NCBI GenBank assembly: GCA_047495785.1
Contig: JBLDXI010000034.1
Coordinates: 496,001-560,000, forward strand
DNA from: Lepidodermella squamata
Lineage: Eukaryota; Animalia; Gastrotricha
Length of the DNA: 64,000 nt
Reading direction: 5' to 3'
Below, piece by piece: positions 14,752 through 45,904 of this stretch. Within the stretch, counting starts at the first letter, position 1; every line of letters begins with the position of its first letter. A program made the translations under genes and the position numbers. Below the pieces are notes generated by a model, which did no database searches, was not told the origin of the DNA, and was given only the letters and a program-made list of their open reading frames with translations.

Positions 14752-16982
14752 ATGGATTCAAGAACGTATCAATCAATGTCGCAGTTCAATGTTATTGGCA
14801 AACCCTTGTGCTATAGTCGCTTACGAACGTCTCTGTTGTGCGAACGTAAAGGGAGCCCCGAAGAACGTGTGGTTGTCAAAGAAACAAACTTGACACAACT
14901 TGCAAAGGACTTCAAGGGAATGGGCGAACTTCTCTGCGAAAGAGTGAGTTTTTGAATTTCTGTCCAAAATTATGAGGAGTTAGAACGGGGATGATAGCGA
15001 GCTTGCTTCAAGAAAAAAGGTGGCATCAGTGCGCGAATTTCAGGGAGGGAAAAAGGGAAAGATGGGGGGAAGGGGGATCCTACTTCGCAAATAACTGGGT
15101 GGGATCATCCTGTAGGGAACAGCCTGCAATAAACTCTTAGAATTCATATAACATGCGTATTTTCAAATCGCAGGACTCGCTAATGGTCAATATCAGCCAT
15201 GCAAACTTGGCGAAGGTTTTCGGCGTCTTCGAAGGTAACTTCTTCATTCTACATTATTTCTTAGTAATAATATTCCAACTATAGAGACATATTCCGGGGA
15301 AGATTTTTCTTCTCTTAACTGCACGATGAGATATTTGGTAATGGAGTTTTGCGAGGGAGGAAGTTTCGAAAGCCTGATCGCGACTGAGACCAGACCCATC
15401 CCGGAAATTATGCTTCAAATATGGTCGCGCCAACTCGTATCAGCTTTGGCTTTTCTTCACGGCCGAAGTATCGTTCATCGCAACATAACGACAAGCAATG
15501 TACTGCTAACAGAAGACCGAGGCACAGCGAAACTAGCTGACTTGGGAATCATCGAGAAATTAGACATAAACAGTGGCTCACAACTTTTTGCTCTAGTGAA
15601 GTGGAAAACTTCGCCTCCTGAGGTATTAAATCCTGAAGAATTAAAGCGCAAACCGAAATCAGCTGCAAGTGATGTTTGGTCGTTTGGATTCACGCTCTTC
15701 AAATTAGCCAACTTTTATGAACCAGTATGAGAATGATCTTGAGTGATTGACTACTGAGTGTTACTTATTAATATTCCAGTTCCTCAATATGGCGACTATT
15801 TCGAGGTAAATCTATGAGTTTGACGCACTTATGAGTTGACTCCGACTGAAATTTATAATAACTTTAGTAATGACTTGAAACCTTTTGACGAGTCACTTGG
15901 CTATTCCAATGAATTCCGGGATTTTGTCATGTCAATGCTTGCCGTCAATCCTGGCGATCGACCTACCTCAACTCAGCTTCAAGAAAACAGTTTTCTGTTG
16001 AAATCAACACCCATGCGGTATACGAAGGTATGATGAATTTTCCGTATCTTACATCTGAATTGTTACAACCCATGCATATTCTTCAGCCGGACCAATCAGT
16101 CGCCGAACCCAACAAAGATGCTGTTAGGGTATATTCGGAATATTTTACCTTTCTCGCTTGATCCATTCTGGAAATAACTAGGAGCTGCTTGACTGCGTGC
16201 GTCGGCGGAAAGACTTGCTGAAATTGGTGCAACTACTGTCGAACAGTGACCTAAATCTTAGCCCTGACTGCATGGACGAAGAGGGTTACCCTCTGCTGTA
16301 CCTTGCGGCTTATAATGGCTACAGTGACATTGTGGAAACTCTAGTCAAGCAATTTGATGCTGACATTGAGGTCCGTAATAGTCATGGCATGTCGCCACTA
16401 TTTGCAGCCGCATTCGAGGGCCACGTCGAGGTGGTGAGGATGTTGGCTGGTGGGTTCAACGCCGACGTGAATAGGGCCGATAAAGATTGCTGGACGCCAC
16501 TGTGGACCGCCGCCTACAAGGGCCACGTCGAGGTGGTGAAGATGCTGGTTGGCGAGTTCAACGCCGACGTGAATAGGGCCACAACCGATGGTCGAACGCC
16601 ACTGTACGCCGCCGCTGATATCGGCCACGTCGAGGTGGTGAGGCTATTGGCTGGCGAGTTCAATGCCGACGTGAATAAGTCCTCAAATATTTGCTGGACA
16701 CCACTGTGGACCGCCGCCTACAATGGTCACGTCGAGGTGGTGCGGACGTTGGCTCATGAGTTCAAAGCCGACGTTAATAAGGCCGCGATTGATGGCTGGA
16801 CGCCGCTTTACGCCGCCGCATGTCAAGGCCACGTCGAGGTGGTGAGGACGTTGGCAGGCGAGTTCAAAGCCGACGTGAATAAGGCCACAAATTTAGGCTC
16901 GACGCCACTGGAGGTCGCCACCCGGCATGGCCATGTCGAGGTGATTGAGGCGCTAGGTGGCCGATATAACGCTAAAGTATAA
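14752..16982 (+). CDS. Pseudokinase-ankyrin protein, copy 2 (7 exons, 7 ankyrin repeats)
   Basis: Exons 14752-14943, 15174-15234, 15285-15724, 15780-15805, 15868-16027, 16087-16128 and 16182-16982 splice in frame with GT-AG boundaries. Confidence 0.85.
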
Positions 16983-19900
16983 GCTGCGCGGAACGAGGGT
17001 GCGACGCAGCATTTATGGCAGTCGCATATCACGGTGTTGGTGATATTCTCCTCATCATAGTCACTTTCGACTGCGTAGATCGCCGTTATTAGACAGCCTT
17101 GCATAGGGCTGAGAACTGTTATGCCAGCATTGCTGCCGATGACAAGCGCAAGACTAGCGTTAACCGCAAGCGGCAAAAGTCAATCTGCTCATCATCATCT
17201 GGAAAAATCCTATCGAATGACAATCGAAATACTCGTGGTCGTGATGTTGTAATTGCGTGATTTGTAACTGTTAACAGAAAACTCGACCGAATTACTTCAT
17301 GTCTTAAACTACTCTGAATTAGTCATTTTCACGTCCCGATCGATAGCAGGTGTAATCTTGAGCATAAGCAAAACTATAAATTAATGCGCCGTGGCTTAAT
17401 GAGCCATTCGGGCGGAAGCTTACTTACGGCTCTGAAAATACGGTATAACGAGATGGAAAAGCTCATTTGTTGAACTGCCATTTTTTCCATGCGGTGAATT
17501 GATCGCGCAATTGTTCTCATGTGACGCGATTTCGCCAGTAATATTTTGAGCCTCAGATAATATCAATGCATTCACATTAGCAAACTTTGAGCCAAGATGA
17601 GAGAAGCAATAATAATAAATCGGATATTTGTTATTACAGCGGCTTTCCTTGATAAAAATTGGCATACTTTACTTAAAGTTGGATCGTATGTGTCAACATA
17701 GTTTGTTTCTATTTCCGGCACACTATTATGGCACGCAAGTTGCGACATTCGCCTCGAATCTATTTTTAAAGGATGAACTTTTGAACTACTCATGGCGGCT
17801 ATTTGCTGTTTCTGATATCAGCAACAGCATCATCATCACTGGAAACTCAGCACTAAGAGAAAAACCTGCTAAAAGTTGCGAAAATTCGAAAATTTACAAA
17901 AAATCAGTGGAATGGTTGCCGCCTGTAATATTTATATCAGCTTGTAAGGGAGATGTTTATATGTAAGTGGGCAAAAATTTAGCCAAATCGGCTATGAAGC
18001 TATTTGAGCCTAACATATTAATTTATCTGTGCTAGCTTCTTAACACCAGTTCGGCGTTCCGATCTGAAGAGGAAGGTTCACGGTGGTCTGTGATCTGATT
18101 ACTTGGGGGTTTGACGTTGTTCGAATGAAAATGAAATTACCGGTATGAACTAGCGAGATGAAGCTAGGATGAAGATTCCGTCAGATCCCATCGTAATATT
18201 TTGAGCATAAAAAATTAATTGATCAGAGTGCACACTCACGCTTTCTTCTTGAAACAAAAACTTTTTTTTGCGTGCGCGCATCTTTTTTGAAAACATGCAT
18301 GTTTACTCCTTGTAAATTGTCATACCCATTTAAAATTTCTGATAAGGTGGATAGCTCATTTTCACTGTGCCACTAGTCTCTATTGCAATTGCTATTATAA
18401 GTAGGATACTTCATGAAACAAAAATGTCGGCATGCCGACCAATTGGCTGAAAAGATAAAATCCTGACCAAGCTGATTCTACTGGCACACCACTGATATGT
18501 AGTATGATACACGAGCTTCTTATCGCCGAAGCTTGACAAAAATTGTGTTTATTTCACGCTTTTATCCTGTGTCATATTTCGAAAGGACTATTTTTCGTCT
18601 CAGCCGTAAGCATCAGCTTGTTTAGATTGAATATGAATTCAGGGACGTATCGGTCTATTTCGGAGTTCTCTGTTATTGAAACCTTGCGTCATGCCACCTT
18701 ACGAACATCTATGTTGTGCGAACGTAATAGGAGTCCTGCAGAACGCGTGGTTATAAAAAAAACCAACTTGACAGACCTTGAAAAAACCTTCAAAGGAATT
18801 GCTGAACTTCTCCGCAAAAGAGTGAGTTTGAAGTGCTACCACTTAAGATTCAACATTATAATGAGGATAGTGAAGTTCTTGAATGATAAAGGTGCGATTA
18901 GCCTGGGGAAACGGCCGGAAAACTCCCAGAATTTATAATTGAAGTATATTTTAAAATGGTCGCAGGATTCGCAAATGATCAATATCAGCCATGACAACAT
19001 AGCCAGGATTTCCGGCTGTTTCGAAGGTTTGCAATCCATTTTTTGATACCAACATTAGCTAAAGGTTTTATATCACAGAGGAATTGCAAGGTTCTAACAT
19101 GAGGTATTTGGTGATCGAGTTTTGCGAGGGTGGAAGTTTCGAAAGCCTGATCACGACGGAGACTGCACCAATCCCTGAAATCATGCTTCAAATATGGTCG
19201 CGCCAACTCGTATCAGCTTTGGCTTACCTTCACGGCCGAAGAATTGTTCATCGCAACATAACGACAAGCAATGTACTTCTAACAGGAGACCGCGGCACAG
19301 CGAAACTAGCTGATTTGGGAATCGTCCAGAAATTAGACGCGTAAGATTGACAAGGGGCATATTTTCATCGATAAATTCGATATCCAATATTCAAACTAGT
19401 GGGTCACGAATGACCGCTCTAGCTGCGTGGTACCCTTCCGCTCCTGAGGTATTGAAAAGCGAACCGAAATCCCCTGCAAGTGATGTTTGGTCGTTGGGAT
19501 TTTCGCTCTTCAAACTAGCCAACTTCCACGAACCAGTATGAGAATGATAAATGATCTCAAATAATTGGTTGCTAAGTTTTTTTTTATCTTTTCCAGTTTG
19601 TCTCTACGCCAAGTATACTGATGTGCCGGGGGAACCCCCGTACTGTCGCCATTCGTGTCGTGGAAATCTTTGTTTCTTTGTTTGTATGTATGCACCCATG
19701 TGCACTGCTTGACTACACGCCTACGTACACGCCTACATAAACGCACACCTTATGTGCACACCATGACTACACGATTTGAATTTGAATTTGAATTTGATAT
19801 TTTGATATTGTATGGGATTTGTCTCCCCTGTTTATGTGATCTCAATGAACAATAAATATTTGAATTTAGAATTTAGTATGCACCCATGCGCAATGTGTGT

Positions 19901-23115: not shown

Positions 23116-25039
23116 CAGCGACAACGTTTTCATAGGCTGTAGTTAAATGCACCTCGCGTAACTTCGTCAGGATCTAAAGTTATGATGATTATATTGTTTT
23201 GTTTCAAATGTCTTATCATACCGCTATAAGTTCACACTCAGTTATGTTGAGTTTGAGGTGCAAGTCACAGGGCACGATCTCAAATAGGTGCGGTGGTAAC
23301 TGAATTAAGGGCAAAAATGTGGCGTGCCAGCCTAGTTCGCATCGTTCGCGTTCATTCAAGTTTGCTAACAAATCTTCCACCAAATCGTAGCGCCTGAGTT
23401 CGCCTTCTGTACCTGTTACAAAGTTTTTCGTGCAGAACAAGCAGCCGAAATTAGCACTATGATGCCCGCATGCTAATAGCCAAACCATCATTGGATAATC
23501 GCAGCAAAGTATCAATTTAAAGTTGTATTTTTTCCCGTCATGTTCCACGCCGTTCAACACCCATTCCACAACCTCGTCGACTACTGGGCGAATATATTCG
23601 CGCGCAGTCTCGTAGCTTTCCTTGCCCTCATAAATGAGCATCTGGAATTCTTCTTCCAGGCCAATTTTATCTTTTTTATCAGCGAAGCACATAGTAGCTT
23701 GTACCCAACCGTCACTGACGTCTGTGCGTCCGGGTGTGCCATCAACTTGGAAGCGTATTTCATTGATTTGTTCTGTGCTCAAATAACCGATTTCCACCCA
23801 TTTCGGCAGATATTCGCGCAAGCTAATGCGAACGCCTTTTTCAGTTTCAGCATCTACTCAAAGGACATTTTTATCTGGAATGTGTATAATTCATAATATT
23901 TACCGCTTGGGACCTTCAGTATATCTAGCATAGTTGCCAATGATCGCCGCGCTTTACGCAGCGTTCGTCGCGAGATATTCTCATTTCCGACCGTTTTTGC
24001 AATTGGCAATGCCGCTCTCGAAGAAACAATTTTATCTGCCATCTCTTCCGCGACCCTGTTTGCGATACTTTTTTTAAATATTATTTATGCTAACTCATAC
24101 TCACCTGTTGCACAAATCATTTTTGGTGATTTCCACGTTTTCACCTGGTGGGACGCTAACTGATACTTCTCCAACGTCTTTGAGCCGCATCGTCATTGTC
24201 ATGCTTTCCACTTCCTGATCTCCCAAATAATGGCGAAAAGCCGCGCTGCTTTTAACACCGTCCAGTATCACTTTAATTGCTTCCTTGGCTCTTGTCACCT
24301 TCTGCCAGCGGCACAGCGTGGAATACGGCTTGCGTCCCACAAACTTCAGCTTCGGCCTGATAACCCGCGTGTAGCGCAAAATTGCTGGTTGTCCATTTAC
24401 ATCTTGTCCGATAGGAATATTATTATTCGGTACATCCATATTTTACCTGATACCTAAACGCAAAATCGATTTTAGTAATTTTATTGCTATTGATAATGAC
24501 ACAAGACGTCGACATTATAAGCCACATCCGAATTGCCCTCTGTAGGTTTCTGTCTAGCCGTAGAAAGCTTCGACGATTTCGCGTGGACAACTCTCGCGCT
24601 GCTAGCATTGAAGTTATCTCATCGCGTCGTAGTTTTATGAGACATTTTTCTCGGTAGTTTCTTACTCATCTATCAATTTTTCACAAAATCTCGCATTAGA
24701 TTTGGATCTATCCGCCGTCGAATGGTTATAAGCTACGAAGAAATGTGCGATGTTTGCGGCGACTTGTCAGGCCTAAACCGACAGTTTTTAGTTAGCGATT
24801 ATCCTTTTTTTCTCAGATGGTATCGCACGTGAGTTCTTTCAACGTACCTGAGCATTTGTTAGTTGATAGATCAAAAAATTAGGGACGAATCTAAATCAAT
24901 TGGAGCTGTTCGTATTCGCTTCCGCTACCGCCAAATTTAACTTACCTCTTCAACTTACTTCATCATCTCTAAATCCATCTTTAAATTAGTTTGCATTGCA
25001 ATTCTTTAAATATTCGCCGTTTTTTAGAAATTTCGCCTT

Positions 25040-39296: not shown

Positions 39297-41699
39297 ATGG
39301 ATTCAAGAACGTATCAATCAATGTCGCAGTTCAATGTTATTGGCAAACCCTTGTGTTATAGTCGCTTACGGACGTCTTTGTTGTGCGAACGTAAAGGGAG
39401 CCCTGAAGAACGTGTGGTTGTCAAAGAAACAAACTTGACACAACTTGCAAAGGACTTCAAAGGAATGAGCGAACTTCTCTGCGAAAGAGTGAGTTTTTGA
39501 ATTTCTGTCCAAAATTATGAGGAGTTGGAACGGGGATGACAGCGAGCTTGCTTCAAGAAAAAAGGTGGCATCAGTGCGCGAAGTTTGGGGAGGGAAAAGG
39601 GGGGATCCTACTTCGCAAACTGGGTGGATCATCCCGAGGGAGCAGCCTGCAAACTCTTAGAATTCATATAACATGCGTATTTTCAAATCGCAGGACTCGC
39701 TAATGGTCAATATCAGCCATGCAAACTTGGCGAAGGTTTTCGGTGTCTTCGAAGGTAACTTCTCCATTCTACATTATTTCTTAGTAATAATATTCCAACT
39801 ATAGAGACATATTCCGGGGAAGATTTTTCTTCTCTTAACTGTACGATGAGATATTTGGTGATGGAGTTTTGCTGCGGAGGAAGTTTCGAAAGCCTGATCG
39901 CGACTGAGACCAGACCCATCCCGGAAATTATGCTTCAAATATGGTCGCGACAACTCGTATCAGCTTTGGCTTTTCTTCACGGCCGAAGTATCGTTCATCG
40001 CAACATTACGGCAAGCAATGTGCTGTTAACAGAAGACCGAGGCACAGCGAAACTAGCTGACTTGGGAATCATCGAGAAATTAGACATAAACAGTGGCTCA
40101 CAACTTTTTGCTCTAGTGAAGTGGAAAACTTCGCCTCCTGAGGTATTAAATCCTGAAGAATTAGAGCGCAAACCGAAATCAGCTGCAAGTGATGTTTGGT
40201 CGTTTGGATTCACGCTCTTCAAATTAGCCAACTTTTATGAACCAGTATGAGAATGATCTTGCGTGATTGACTACTGAGTGTTACTTATTAATTTTTCAGT
40301 TCCTCAATATGGCGACTATTTCGAGGTAAACCTATGAGTTTGACGCACTTGCCTCTGACTGAAATCTATTATAACTTTAGTAATGACTTGAAACCTTTTG
40401 ACGAGTCACTCGGCTATTCCAATGAATTCCGGGATTTTGTCATTTCAATGCTTGCCGTCAATCCTGACGATCGACCGACCTCAAGTCAGCTTCGAGAACA
40501 CAGTTTTCTGTTGAAATCAGCACCTATGCGGTATACAAAGGTATGATGAATTTTCCGTATCTTACATCTGAATCTTTAAAACCCATGCATATTCTTCAGC
40601 CGGACCAATCAGTCGCCGAACCCAAGAAAGATGCTGTTAAGGTAGATTCGGGAAATTTTACCTTTCATGCTTAATCCATTCTTAAAATTTCTAGGAGCTG
40701 CTTGACTGCGTGCGTCGGCGGAAAGACTTGCTGAAATTGGTGCAGTTACTGTCGAAAAGTGACCTAAATCTTAGCCCAGACTGCATGGACGAAGAGGGTT
40801 GCCCTCTGTTGTACCTTGCTGCTCAAAAGGGCTACAGCGACATTGTTGAAATTCTGGCCAGGCAATTTGATGCAGTTATTGAGGTTCATAATGCAAATCG
40901 CAGGACACCACTGTGGACCGCCGCCTCCAATGGCCACGTCGAGGTGGTGAGGACCTTGGCTGGTGAGTTCAACGCCGACGTGAATAGGGCCGAGGAAAAT
41001 GGCTGGACGCCACTTAACGCCGCCGCAAATATAGGCCACGTCGAGGTGGTGAGGACGTTGGCTGGCGAGTTCAACGCCGACGTGAATAAGACCAAAAATT
41101 CTGGCTCGACGCCACTGTGGACCGCCGCCTTCAATGGCCACGTCGAGGTGGTGAGGGTGTTGGCTGGTGAGTTCAACGCCGACGTGAATAAGGCCGATGA
41201 AGATGGCTGGACGCCACTGTGGACCGCCGCCTTCAATGGCCACGTCGAGCTGGTGAGGGCGTTGGCTGGTGAGTTCAACGCCGACGTGAATAAGGCCGAC
41301 GAAGATGGCTCGACGCCACTGTGGACCGCCGCAAATAAGGGCCACGTCGAGGTGGCGAGGACGTTGGTGGGTGAGTTCAACGCCGACGTGAATAAGACCA
41401 CAAATTCTGGCTCGACGCCACTGTGGACCGCCGCCTTCAATGGCCACGTCGAGGTGGTGAAGATGTTAGCTGGCGAGTTCAACGCCGACGTGAATAAGGC
41501 CGCGAATAATAGTTGGACGCCACTGTTCGCCGCCGCATGTAATGGCCACTCCAAGGTGGTGAGGATTTTGGCTGTCGAGTTCAACGCCGACGTGAATAAG
41601 ACCGCAGATTATGGCTCGACGCCACTGGACGTCGCCACCCGGCGGGGCCATGTCGAGGTGGTAGAGGCGCTAGGTGGCCGATATAACGCCAAAGTGTAA
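39297..41699 (+). CDS. Pseudokinase-ankyrin protein, copy 5 (9 ankyrin repeats); recent duplicate of copy 2
   Basis: Exon structure and sequence nearly identical to copy 2 in the kinase half; ankyrin ORF 40710-41699. Confidence 0.85.
40890..41670 (+). repeat. Coding 102-bp tandem repeats (34-aa ankyrin units)
   Basis: Recurrent GGCCACGTCGAGGTGGTGAGG..GAGTTCAACGCCGACGTGAATA at 102-bp period. Confidence 0.9.
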
Positions 41700-42239
41700 G
41701 CTGCGCGGAACGATGGTGCAGCGCTGCATTTATGGCAGCCGCATATCGCGGCCATCACGGCGTTGGTGATATTCTCCTCCCGAAGTTCCTAGTCACCTTC
41801 GCCATAATAACGCAGCCTTGCATAGGGCTGAGAACTGTTATGCCAGCATTTCTGCCGATGTCAAGCGCAAGACTAGCGAAAAACTCAAGCGGGAAAAGTC
41901 AATCTGCCCATCATCTGGAAAAATCCCATCGAACATCTTAGTCTGGATTTGCAGTGTCAAAGTCCACTTTTTTTGCTGTTCAATGCGTCATGGTGGTGGC
42001 GGTGGTCGGAGCGGTCGGAGCGGTCGGAGCGGTCGGTGACCGTGGTCATTATTAGCATGAAAAAAATTGTTTTTCTCATCTTCCGTCATTTATTGGATTT
42101 TCTAAATAAATAAAAAGAGCCTTTTTTGGGGTAATAAATTACTATCATACAAATATGAATTAAAATCTTTGAATCAATCTGAACATTTGCAGAAGTAATT
42201 ATTATTGATTCTATAGGTTTCCAGAATTTCTTTCATCAC

Positions 42240-44175
42240 ATGCCGGCGACTTACTCTGAGCCGACCATAGTTGATCAAGATGCAGCTAGGCGCAGCTTGT
42301 CTCGAATGAAAGGCCCCGTTTCATCAATTTCCAACCGATCAGCTGTACATCGAGCTGAGGTGGTGCAGAATCTTTTCTTGCAGTCGTTACCTGTGGCGTG
42401 GCCTTTCAATGCAGCTATGGACGGGGCTGTTATTAAAAAAGCCCAATTAGTTGTAGAATACGAAAACATAGGCGTGGTTGCGTCGGAATGGCCATTGAAA
42501 AACGAGTCTAAACAGGAACAGGCTGGAGAAAAAACGCAGAGGTTAAGGTTGAATTGTCAACTGGTAATATTACAGCTTGATTATTATGTTTAGTTTGGTT
42601 CGCCTCGGCTTGAAACACGGCATTAATGCTTCCACCCTCATGACCATTAAAAATGAAATTGGCTACCAAAGTGTAACAAAAGAAAACTTCTATGGAGTTC
42701 GAAAGCGCCTTGCTATGCTTCACCCAATAACATCAACTCACCGCGGATTAGGCGCATATCGCTCGGTAGATTCAATCGTTAAAAAAATGATTGTTCGAGG
42801 CGACTTGGAAAAAGACGTTGTTAATGATCTACGGCTTCAGGTAAATCAAAATTACATATGGTCCTTGCTAGGGCAAAGTCAAATTGAACAGGTGGATGGC
42901 ATGGCAGCTAGGACGAGCATGGCAGATGCAACAGTCAGTTCATACATTTGTGCTGCTAAGACAAAGGCCAAAGTGGGCTGCGCTGGTGAATATCAGCTGT
43001 CAATGTACCAGGGAAGCGAATCTTCCGAGATGTTCAGGAAGTTTTTACAGCCAACCATCGGCGAGCTCTCGAATATCGTTCGAGATGGCTTGAAGATCGG
43101 GGATGATTCTTACGATTTTCGATTATTGGTTTGCTGTGACTACCCAGCTACTGTCAAGCTCTTTGGCTGTGGTCACCAGGGCGCCGATTTTCGTTGCGTA
43201 ATCTGTGAAAGGAATATTAAAAAGCTCAATGTCCTTTCGCGGAAACGCCGATTCGACTCATACGAAAATTCATTTAAAGGAAAGCTTGGTTGGTCGAAAG
43301 ATTTTGCCCCGATGATTCGTTTGGGTCCTGACAAACTTCTGATTTTACCTGATTTCTTCCACATGAAGGTCAATATTGCTCGTCAACTTATTGCTAAAGT
43401 AGGTATTCCTTCCAACAACTTGAAAGTTCAATATTCTATTTAACAATAGATCATACGTGTTCTGAAAAGCCATGGGTTCCGCGATGCTATGAACGATCTT
43501 GTTTCTTTCTTGAAAACCAACTCGAAAAAGCCAAAATTTTCTATCGAGACCAAAGCCACAAAACGAGGTGTCATTAGTGTGCTTATCAAAAATTCCAATC
43601 ACTACGGCATTTCCAAGGTATGAACCTAATTTTGTGTTATATGAAATAAATTAGTTCCTAACTGAAATTTAAACTAGGCATTTGCTGAATTAGCCAAGAG
43701 AATGATTGGAAAGCCTCTATCCGAGTCATTTTTCCTACCGGCTAACTTCCTCAACTCAGTCAAAACTTCAGGTCGTAACACTCGCAGGGGATCTATTCAG
43801 TCTCAAAGCAGCCGTCAGAAGCTACTGCTGTCTTCATTAAAGGATTTGCGAACCTTGTGTCTATCCACCTTGATGGTATTTCGGGACATCGAGCTGAACC
43901 ATGTGACGTCAACAGCTAAAATTATGGCTAGCTGCTACGAAAAGATATGGCATCGAACTATTGGACCAGTTACTTCTTACGCTCATTTGCTCGGGTGCCA
44001 TGTTTACGAGCTTCTGGAGAAAGGGGTCGATTTGGCAAAACTCTGCACTGAGAGCATTGAGTTGAGCAACAAGAAAAGACGCAGAACGATGGACTGTTCA
44101 ATTTCAAACAAATACTCCAAACCGTGCCAGATTTTGAAAATCGAAAACATGAAGGAAAATTTGAAGCTGATTTGA
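42240..44175 (+). CDS. RAG1-core/Transib-like DDE transposase, ~573 aa, 5 exons
   Basis: Exons 42240-42541, 42594-42840, 42892-43398, 43450-43617 and 43678-44175 join in frame; LQVDG, CCDY, CVIC, DFFHMKVNI, YAHLLGCH, TESIELSNK. Confidence 0.85.
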
Positions 44176-44342
44176 AAATATTTGAAGTACCTAGAAACTG
44201 TGTTTCATTTGATAAATAAAAAGTTTGAACTATGTCATCATGTCATCATTTTATTTCCGCATTAATCTTTGTCGACGTAGCTTTATTTCTTCCTCAACTT
44301 TGATTTATCATAGGCAGGAGGCAAAAGATCACAGCGTAACCT

Positions 44343-45412
44343 TTACTTGTCAACCTCATAACCATCACGATCAGCATTATAGAACAAACGGAACTTGTCC
44401 TTAGCGTCCCACTGAAAACGAAACACGCCCGCTCTTATAAGGCGGTGGATCACAGGTATTTGACGGGCAATGGCGCCAGTTGTTCTACCCAACTCTTTAT
44501 CGAGGTCACGATCTGTTGGTGTCTTTGCCATCCAAAATTCGATCATTTTAGCTGTAACACTTTCAAATTTTATCCCAGACCTGACAACATAGGCGAAACA
44601 ATGCCGAATACGATTTCTTTCATCGGGACTCCACTCGGTTCTGCTCTTCGTTGATTTAGCTGTGAGATTAAACACTATTTTACACAATTTGCACAGCAAA
44701 ACAAAGGCTTACAATTTGAATAGCTGCTCGCCACATTTTGTATATGGTTCCATGACATTTTGAAAGCATAACTTGAATCTAGATCGACTCGGTCGCTGTC
44801 AGGGACGCTGAAGAACAACGGTCCTGGAGCAAACGAATTGCCTGATTTACCGCTCTTCTTGCGCATATCACGTGAAACCGCTCGATTGGATTTAGTCGAT
44901 TGGGTCGGCTCGATTGGTTCACGTTCATCGGGCTCATGTTGCTCATCAGCATCGTCCTCGCCATCATCCTCGCTATCGTCCTCGCCATCACCCCCGTCGT
45001 CATCCTCGTCATCGCTCTCATCTTCATCCTCCTCATTGTCCTCGTCATCTTCCGATGCATCTTCCTCGCCATCAACAACAGCATCACCCACGGCACCATC
45101 CTGGCCATCATCATGACCATCGACCTCGTGATCATCTCTGCCTTCAACTCCATTACGCTCCACCTCCATTTCTTGGCCGCTAACACCTTCCGCTTCGCCA
45201 GTTTTTCGCTGTTTGGCTACCCGCGGCAACTTCAACGCGACCTCTTCAGCAACAGGAGCGGCCTTTCTTCGTGTGCTTGTCTCGTTTTCTCGCGCACTCT
45301 TTCGCCGCGCATCGCTCTGCTTGCGATTGCGATCTTTCTCCTCAAGAATTGCCGCATCTTTTGTGGCTTGAATTGCCGCTTCCTTTGCTGCGATTTTCCG
45401 CGTTTTGGTCAT
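44343..45412 (-). CDS. Second gene of RAG1-like element 2: basic N-terminus, acidic tract, C-terminal Myb/SANT-like domain (~338 aa, 2 exons)
   Basis: Exons 45412-44713 and 44659-44343 join in frame; RTEWSPDERNRIRHCF...ELGRTTGAIARQI. Confidence 0.7.
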
Positions 45413-45904
45413 GAAAAAAAGAATATTTAAATAAGTAAATAATGGGGAAATAATGCTCCCGAGAAATTATTAGATGATAAAAAATTCCCGACCTAATCGA
45501 CCACCCCACCGCCCCGACCACACATCATGAAGCAAAAAATGTGTGGACTTTGACACTGCAAATCCAGACTAAGATGAATGACAATCGAAATACTCGTGCT
45601 CGTGATGTTGTAATTGCGTGATTTGTAACTGTTTACAGAAAATTCGACCGAATTACTTCATGTCTTAAACTACTCTGAATTAGTCATTTTCACGTCCCGA
45701 TCGATAGCAGGTGTAATCTTGAGCATAAGCAATACTATAAATTACTGCATCGCGGCACAATGAGCCATTCGGGCGGAAGCTTACTTACAGCTCTGAAAAT
45801 ACGGTATAATGAGATGGAAAAGCTCATTTTTTGAACTGCCATTTTTTCAATGCGGTGAATCGATCACGCAATTGTTCCCATGTGACGCGATTACGCCAAT
45901 ATTA

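Follow-up and report, generated by a model that had tools for sequence, protein, structure and literature searches.

A 64-kb stretch of the genome of the gastrotrich Lepidodermella squamata (positions 496,001 to 560,000 of contig JBLDXI010000034.1, assembly GCA_047495785.1; hereafter the window, numbered from its first letter) contains a transposon of about 3.6 kb at 41934-45576. Between perfect 34-nt terminal inverted repeats it carries two convergent genes, one for a transposase with a RAG1/Transib-type core in structural models and one for a small partner protein that probably binds DNA. The element is probably an autonomous cut-and-paste transposon of the CACTA/EnSpm-Mirage-Chapaev-Transib (CMCT) clade, within which we assign it to no named subgroup. 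The placement follows from its ends, its target-site duplication, the motifs and predicted fold of its transposase, and weak profile matches.

The inverted repeats can be extended from 34 to 41 nt at 93% identity, and the element terminates in CATCT..AGATG (CAT..ATG). Each repeat is bipartite, with a terminal CAT(T/C)(A/T)T(A/G) and an inner TTGCAGnnTCAAAGTCCA block that can be written as TTGCAGTGTCAAAGTCCA, and both parts are kept across sister families in the same genome. The element is flanked by sequence of a kinase and ankyrin-repeat gene family that is tandemly duplicated on the same contig and provides two paralogous empty sites (ATCG-AA-TGAC), one in the window at about 17216-17217 and one at G000:C34:~399305-399310. 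Both empty flanks carry a single AA, which shows that the insertion produced a 2-bp duplication. The features of the ends are as follows.

41932-41933, no strand: left copy of the target-site duplication, AA (single AA at the empty paralogous sites)
41934-41967, plus strand: 5' terminal inverted repeat, CATCTTAGTCTGGATTTGCAGTGTCAAAGTCCAC (from end comparison)
42004-42039, plus strand: subterminal tandem 9-bp repeats, four GCGGTCGGA units with four GGTCGG cores
45488-45520, minus strand: 3' subterminal GGTCGG/GGTCGA motifs, two or three units, inverted relative to the 5' set
45543-45576, minus strand: 3' terminal inverted repeat (from end comparison)
45577-45578, no strand: right copy of the target-site duplication, AA (single AA at the empty paralogous sites)
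17216-17217 (approximate), no strand: empty paralogous target site with a single AA, in the same window

The window has only 22 GGTCGG hexamers in all, and the subterminal repeats of this motif are putative sites of binding by either the partner protein or the transposase. By analogy, this arrangement would correspond to the classic layout of accessory-protein binding sites in CACTA-type elements. At the second empty site (G000:C34:~399290-399305) a 6-bp deletion (caatcg) is also present, beginning 6 bp beyond the target AA on the right; it lies away from the insertion point and is for this reason not read as an excision footprint. An apparent empty-site joint in one public sequencing run (X1; 41930 to 45576) was considered as a polymorphic insertion and rejected, the contig being about 92% identical and thus a paralogue.

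The transposase gene lies on the plus strand and has five exons that encode 575 amino acids (aa) without a stop. Its introns are placed by GT-AG ends, restored frame and comparison with paralogues rather than by RNA, and diverged paralogues have their exon boundaries at matching positions of the protein. A four-exon model of 592 aa was rejected when the paralogue alignment revealed a further in-frame intron of 51 nt; its 17 codons are missing from all paralogues and metagenome relatives, and we therefore take it to mark the fifth-exon boundary.

42240-42547, plus strand: transposase exon 1, N-terminal region (boundary conserved in paralogues)
42594-42840, plus strand: transposase exon 2, pre-RNase-H region
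42841-42891, plus strand: in-frame 51-nt intron, GT..AG (17 codons absent from paralogues and metagenome relatives)
42892-43398, plus strand: transposase exon 3, RNase-H core with D187, D268, zinc ligands C287/C290, and H342
43450-43617, plus strand: transposase exon 4
43678-44175, plus strand: transposase exon 5, with the invariant GPVTSYAHLxxHxYE containing H513/H518, E535/E538 (last catalytic acid) and the stop

A first-pass annotation of this DNA had described an intact two-gene element with perfect 34-bp inverted repeats and an AA duplication, a five-exon transposase of about 573 aa, and a convergent two-exon gene of about 338 aa. The ends and the two empty sites confirm the element. The five open exons stand, with the length of the product revised slightly to 575 aa, and the second gene proves to encode 338 aa, with a 53-nt intron that a cDNA-like contig corroborates.

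Every residue of the motif order that this annotation had listed (D..D..CxxC..H..HxxxxH..E) is found in the transposase: D187 (QVDG), D268 (CCDY), C287/C290 (CVIC), H342, H513/H518 (HLLGCH), and E535/E538. The catalytic and zinc-ligand residues are invariant or nearly so in paralogues. D268 is followed by C287 after 19 residues and H518 by E538 after 20, spacings that equal those from D708 to C727 and from H942 to E962 in mouse RAG1. The annotation matched this string to the RAG1 core, but it does not single out RAG1: according to one study, the whole EnSpm/Mirage/Chapaev/Transib/RAG1 clade shares a D..D..CxxC..H(4)H..E string, together with mostly CA..TG termini and duplications of 2-5 bp (PMC12730594).

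An AlphaFold model of exons 2-3 (268 aa; 16-sequence alignment; predicted local distance difference test score, pLDDT, 74.8) was compared with solved structures. The top 49 Foldseek matches in the PDB are all RAG1, BbRAGL or HzTransib, with E values from 1e-6 to 5.5e-3 and 47 of the 49 at E <= 1e-3. VIA-align gives Z 12.2 to RAG1 residues 501-807 (218 residues aligned, root-mean-square deviation 4.6), Z 9.7 to amphioxus BbRAGL and Z 6.7-7.8 to HzTransib, and the next unrelated fold is that of the P-element transposase at Z 4.8. As modelled, the transposase core has the RAG1/Transib-type fold that the first-pass annotation proposed to look for.

Such a fold raises the idea that the element truly belongs with the Transib/RAG1-like lineage, as a member or a sister, and is a ProtoRAG-type transposon in which another partner replaces RAG2. 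This would agree with the best solved-structure match being RAG1, above HzTransib, with RAG1 clusters being the top matches (0.96) by language-model features in the ESM-Atlas, and with the convergent two-gene layout, which we take to resemble that of ProtoRAG. We nevertheless consider it quite improbable. RAG1, BbRAGL and HzTransib are the only clade members that turn up among the solved structures, and they would therefore top the list for any member of the clade. The shape neighbours in the ESM-Atlas comprise RAG1, DUF1280, Transposase_21 and unnamed eukaryotic clusters, all with template-modelling (TM) scores of 0.59-0.68, so that Chapaev-type and CACTA-type clusters stand at the same TM as RAG1; the feature neighbours are the same mix of clusters. 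Among PDB sequences, a family profile matches neither RAG1 nor Transib chains even at E 10. The RAG1 model PF12940 has no match in the genome at E 1, a blank that the controls share and that consequently is no proof of absence. At sequence level only Transposase_21 and DUF1280 are matched, the ends begin with CAT and contain no CAC heptamer, and the partner has neither a kelch nor a PHD domain. The 2-bp duplication differs from the 5-bp duplication of Transib and RAG1, although some Transib lineages have 3-bp or TA duplications and duplication length is labile (10.64898/2026.08.26.747230). Because published Transib duplication lengths vary, only the sequence criterion weighs against Transib membership.

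The sequence profiles lean weakly toward CACTA and Chapaev, and the RAG1 affinity claimed in the first-pass annotation finds no counterpart in them. Transposase_21 represents CACTA, DUF1258 Mirage and DUF1280 Chapaev (PMC3985635). Among 16 members of the transposase family, nine match Transposase_21 weakly (best E 6.9e-5), three match DUF1280 (PF06918; E 0.037 or worse), and none matches DUF1258 (PF06869) at E 1. The window transposase itself scores 16.6 bits against Transposase_21 (PF02992; E 0.0045), below the gathering score of 28.6 bits, and the element's own family reaches 21-22 bits in a genome scan with this model. When all exon pieces and both partner exons are compared with Pfam, the sub-threshold match to Transposase_21 is the only one. 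An exhaustive HMMER search with the core exon against 1.84 billion representative proteins yields seven fragmentary relatives, and a profile search of a 5.8-billion protein set yields one match. Both collections are poor in eukaryotes, so that these small numbers say little about rarity.

The element could also belong to a family that has already been catalogued, for example as 'EnSpm/CACTA' or 'Mirage' in Repbase or Dfam, from this or a related animal and with the same two genes and 2-bp duplication, and then be nothing new. Mirage is the CACTA-Mirage-Chapaev (CMC) group with 2-bp duplications, the value found here. In Repbase, Mirage and Chapaev are placed under EnSpm (PMC4455052), animal CMC elements with 2-bp duplications have been published, such as ENS1_Cis and related miniature elements (PMC6004678), and a transposase with a second open reading frame (ORF) is the standard CACTA layout (PMC4158355). 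The last of these also deprives the two-gene layout of the special status that the first-pass annotation gave it. Many unnamed eukaryotic clusters in the ESM-Atlas are similar to exon 5. We regard prior cataloguing as possible and do not favour it: no family member matches the Mirage model, relatives are few in the two eukaryote-poor collections, and the partner domain has no relative in Pfam, the PDB or the Atlas. In the papers searched, a search that did not extend to Repbase and Dfam, we found no description of this partner domain or of an element that combines these ends, this duplication and a convergent layout.

The partner gene is convergent with the transposase gene and has two exons on the minus strand that encode 338 aa without a stop.

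44343-44659, minus strand: partner exon 2, conserved helical domain of about 104 aa with a beta-hairpin (candidate DNA-binding helix-turn-helix, HTH)
44660-44712, minus strand: partner intron, 53 nt (removal seen in a cDNA-like contig)
44713-45412, minus strand: partner exon 1, with a basic N-terminus, a long acidic D/E stretch and a Ser-rich linker (not conserved between families)

The partner gene is spliced and transcribed, as seen in a public run that we judge to be cDNA-like from the SMART-type adaptor letters on a loose end. A contig of 340 nt from this run joins 44659 to 44713 with 0 mismatches, removing an intron with GT..AG ends (CT..AC on the plus strand). The cDNA-like contigs cover 44373-45411 and almost none of the transposase, and in a third run, labelled as a different organism, there are contigs that are 90-97% identical over both genes. 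Run X2 also has a cDNA-like contig over 41980-42110 and a loose end at 42129 that continues into A-rich sequence and SMART adaptor letters; some transcript end or library chimera thus lies before the transposase ATG, in non-coding sequence of the 5' part of the element.

Conservation of the partner is confined to its last ~104 residues, and the N-terminal 233 residues vary between families. At least eight diverged families in the genome have this domain, in each case in an open frame that follows the transposase in convergent orientation. Across these families the identity of the domain falls from 63% to 26% and that of the transposase ranges from about 25-65%. Invariant residues of the domain include W9, N15, R18, H19, I63, I67, G77, F79 and F81. 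It is modelled with high confidence (pLDDT 88.4) as five helices followed by a beta-hairpin. In eight diverged members no Pfam family, Myb/SANT included, is matched at E 5. Neither Foldseek against the PDB nor the Atlas gives a significant match to the fold, and none of the feature matches in the ESM-Atlas is above 0.88. A wide structural search gives best matches of Z 3.2-4.4, mostly to DNA-binding three-helix domains, among them the TEBP-2 Myb-containing domain (MCD3), homeodomains, CDC5L Myb, the GT-1 trihelix, ARR1, TRF1, TBF1, Zeste and TetR N-domains. On these models the domain is probably an HTH-type DNA binder. The Myb/SANT-like identity put forward in the first-pass annotation has slight fold support and no Pfam match, and is possible. 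Its description of the partner as standing in place of RAG2 is a framing rather than a finding.

The second gene might instead be a self-regulator of the element, as a repressor or for copy-number control, or a mere passenger, and not a cofactor of transposition. That the cDNA-like run covers the partner and not the transposase is what a constitutive regulator would predict. A passenger would not keep its place, orientation and open frame beside transposases that have diverged to about 25-30% identity, and conservation confined to the C-terminal domain is what a functional module would show. Acting as a repressor would not conflict with an accessory role, since TnpA of CACTA elements is both, and the two are not separable here. 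On balance we find the regulator or passenger reading unlikely. A tblastn search with the partner finds nothing in four metagenome relatives of the transposase (L044-L047), on contigs of 1.2-2.6 kb that are too short to show a partner. Prediction of a complex between transposase exons 2-3, exon 5 and the partner C-terminal domain gives no answer (score 0.00), which speaks neither for nor against partnership.

The genome (121 Mb in 151 contigs) contains four full-length copies of the element, the window copy and those at C26:560596-564239, C11:1820045-1823691 and C31:388517-392949, which differ pairwise by 0.25-0.41%. All four are flanked by 2-bp duplications, AA for the window copy and TC, AA and AT for the others. 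The 338-aa partner is intact in each of them, and both genes are open in three. The three intact 575-aa transposases differ at one residue (L483M), and between the window and C11 copies one of five substitutions in transposase exons changes an amino acid. The sole stop in the C11 copy (TAA, 42886) falls within the 51-nt intron, so that three copies have an intact transposase. In the remaining copy, on C31, the last transposase exon is interrupted by a 792-bp insertion after window position 43916. The left end and flank of this C31 copy (aggcatacccat followed by AATCTTAG) are present twice, 15 kb apart (C31:388517-392949 and C31:403702-...), and there is an additional partner-gene copy at C31:404622-404933. 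These duplicated pieces suggest a segmental duplication that includes the element.

A miniature inverted-repeat element of about 222 bp has the end sequence of the transposon, with two mismatches in the 5' terminal inverted repeat and a more diverged 3' repeat. At least 26 sites in the genome lie within three mismatches of this end. Six of the eight miniature copies examined have a matching 2-bp duplication (GA, AT, AA, AC, AA and TA), where the chance of a match is 1 in 16 per site. Close to its 5' end, the miniature element has stretches that contain GTCGG (GGGTCGGTCG and CTGGTCGGG). Its copies include L021-L028, for example at C1:1140767-1140800, C2:2560116-2560149 and C15:2037113-2037146. 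The family has moved very recently and also mobilises this miniature derivative, and the identity of its copies suggests that it is probably still active.

Six sister families with full elements of 3.2-3.5 kb, fetched from the same genome, have the same two convergent genes. Their ends follow CAT(T/C)(A/T)T(A/G)-(8-9 nt)-TTGCAGnnTCAAAG(T/G)(C/T)CA, and CAT..ATG termini are found in all seven families when the element's own is included. Matching 2-bp duplications flank five of the six sister elements (TG, TA, AC, GT and AA). The sole exception (L036:3867-7156, G000:C4:~1166580-1169869) has GG and CC outside CAT..ATG, with no matching 2-bp direct duplication, and its inverted repeat is two bases longer. 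The dinucleotides duplicated overall are AA, TC, AT, GA, AC, TA, TG and GT, so the duplication has no strict target sequence. Most sister families have family-specific short repeats just inside their ends, and one (L042) has a similar GGTCGG run. The recurrence of the partner gene in every copy and in diverged families, and the tally of 2-bp duplications in full copies, miniatures and sister families, bear out what the first-pass annotation had proposed to check.

Other transposase sequences are found in the window and elsewhere in the genome. A distant fragment of the same superfamily lies in the window at 23222-23749 on the minus strand, 18 kb upstream of the element; it has an open frame with 36-38% identity over the catalytic exon and is near-identical in type to a locus on another contig (L033, C32:29281-29808). 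The loci C42:58506-58910 and C42:1366028-1366432 lie in open frames of 578 and 495 aa with Transposase_21 matches above the cut-off (36.8 bits), and they are bona fide CACTA-type transposases.

The element can be compared with four known systems. With the CMC group it has in common the motif string, CA..TG termini, a duplication within the 2-4 bp range of that group (10.64898/2026.08.26.747230), short subterminal repeats, a second ORF as in CACTA, and the weak Transposase_21 and DUF1280 matches. It differs in having CATC/CATT rather than CACTA ends, in Pfam scores that stay below threshold, in the blank for DUF1258, and in a partner that has no detectable similarity to anything named. EnSpm/CACTA elements have CACTA..TAGTG termini and 3-bp duplications, as opposed to CATCT..AGATG and 2 bp here. 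Chapaev makes 4-bp duplications, and the element makes 2-bp ones. Spm produces its second protein by alternative splicing, whereas the partner gene here is convergent and separately transcribed.

Resemblance to Transib, RAG1 and ProtoRAG is found in the modelled pre-RNase-H, RNase-H and ZnC2 fold, in the spacing of zinc-ligand and catalytic residues and, for ProtoRAG, in the convergent layout. The absence of a sequence match to the RAG1 Pfam model or to RAG1/Transib chains, the 2-bp rather than 5-bp duplication and the missing CAC heptamer set the element apart from Transib and RAG1, and a partner that is a small helical domain rather than a kelch-PHD protein sets it apart from ProtoRAG. PIF/Harbinger elements have a similar two-gene design, with a small helical and probably DNA-binding protein beside the transposase, and the basic N-terminus of the partner is compatible with a nuclear-import role. 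Their transposase is unrelated (PHIS/IS5-like versus RAG1-fold), Harbinger duplications are 3-bp TWA, and the partner here has no Myb or SANT match in Pfam. Similar termini and duplications are reported for Plavaka B, a fungal CMCT lineage with CATCA..TGATG ends and 2-3 bp duplications (PMC12730594), near the CATCT..AGATG and 2 bp of the element; the likeness is one of description and not of compared sequences. Plavaka B is known from fungi and the element from an animal, and the part of that source at hand does not mention a partner gene of this kind for Plavaka.

The motif residues, CA..TG termini, 2-bp duplication and modelled RAG1/Transib-type core fold are all features that the element shares with the CMCT clade. 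The family lies inside the clade and yet, by the tests run, in none of its named groups, since the shared motifs, fold and ends contrast with named-group profiles that are sub-threshold or blank. Recent activity and the want of a named subgroup agree with the first-pass annotation, which suggested an undescribed and possibly active branch of the RAG1/Transib/Chapaev group; a special link to RAG1 is not supported. It may further be proposed, tentatively, that the family is a distinct unnamed CMCT lineage, with two-part CAT..ATG ends, 2-bp duplications and an obligatory tail-to-tail DNA-binding partner, that is still active.

Several points weigh against these assignments. The placement in the clade derives from motifs, ends, fold and weak profiles rather than from a tree, and it does not distinguish a position inside the CMC group from one beside it. 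Every Pfam match of the transposase family is below the curated cut-off. The transposase model spans exons 2-3 only and includes the 17 unspliced codons, and the last catalytic acid, E535 or E538, is assigned by motif and spacing. The one cDNA-like run shows no transposase transcript. A DNA-binding role for the partner depends on weak fold matches, of Z 4.4 or less, and a partner profile finds no match among PDB sequences, in line with the Pfam blank. Current activity is judged from the identity of the copies.

A mechanism can be sketched. The 575-aa transposase, with a RAG1-type pre-RNase-H and RNase-H core and a triad of acidic residues (DDE: D187, D268, and E538 or E535), would bind the inner block of the two-part 34-bp ends and cut at the CAT..ATG termini with its DDE site. 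The C2H2 zinc module may stabilise the active-site insertion, as in RAG1. On reinsertion, strand transfers staggered by 2 bp would generate the 2-bp duplication at targets of no strict sequence. The partner is probably a lineage-specific accessory factor. Its C-terminal helical domain, the conserved part, is most likely a DNA binder and may recognise the GGTCGG repeats. By binding these subterminal repeats, the transposase or both, the partner might help to build the complex or to regulate it. Nuclear import could be aided by the basic N-terminus, and the acidic stretch could make protein contacts. This role would parallel that of TnpA/ORF2 in CACTA elements or of the Myb-like protein in Harbinger.

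The element lies just downstream of an ankyrin-repeat ORF (40710-41699; Ank_2, E 2.5e-102), which is preceded by a protein-kinase exon (39846-40250). Together they form a kinase-ankyrin unit, of which contig C34 has more than 10 tandem copies. The region in the window extends over 39846-41941 and has paralogues at about 16900-17500 of the window and at C34:399016-399609.

The whole CACTA-Mirage-Chapaev-Transib clade shares RAG1-like motifs and the RAG1-like fold, and neither is by itself a sign of a RAG ancestor; the element is thus a caution for annotation, in which these features are insufficient to name one. Membership in the Transib/RAG1-like lineage would, if true, bear directly on the origin of V(D)J recombination. 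RAG1-fold transposases are few, and the solved structures that turn up are RAG1, amphioxus RAG1L and one Transib. A compact 3.6-kb element with four near-identical copies, open genes and a miniature substrate is a practical candidate for biochemistry. Such work could reveal how the strand-transfer stagger, which is 2 bp here versus 5 bp in Transib and RAG, is determined by this fold, and how RAG1-fold enzymes use partner proteins. If the family is indeed a distinct lineage, then it would provide an independent RAG1-type enzyme with a dedicated partner and a candidate for a new transposon tool.

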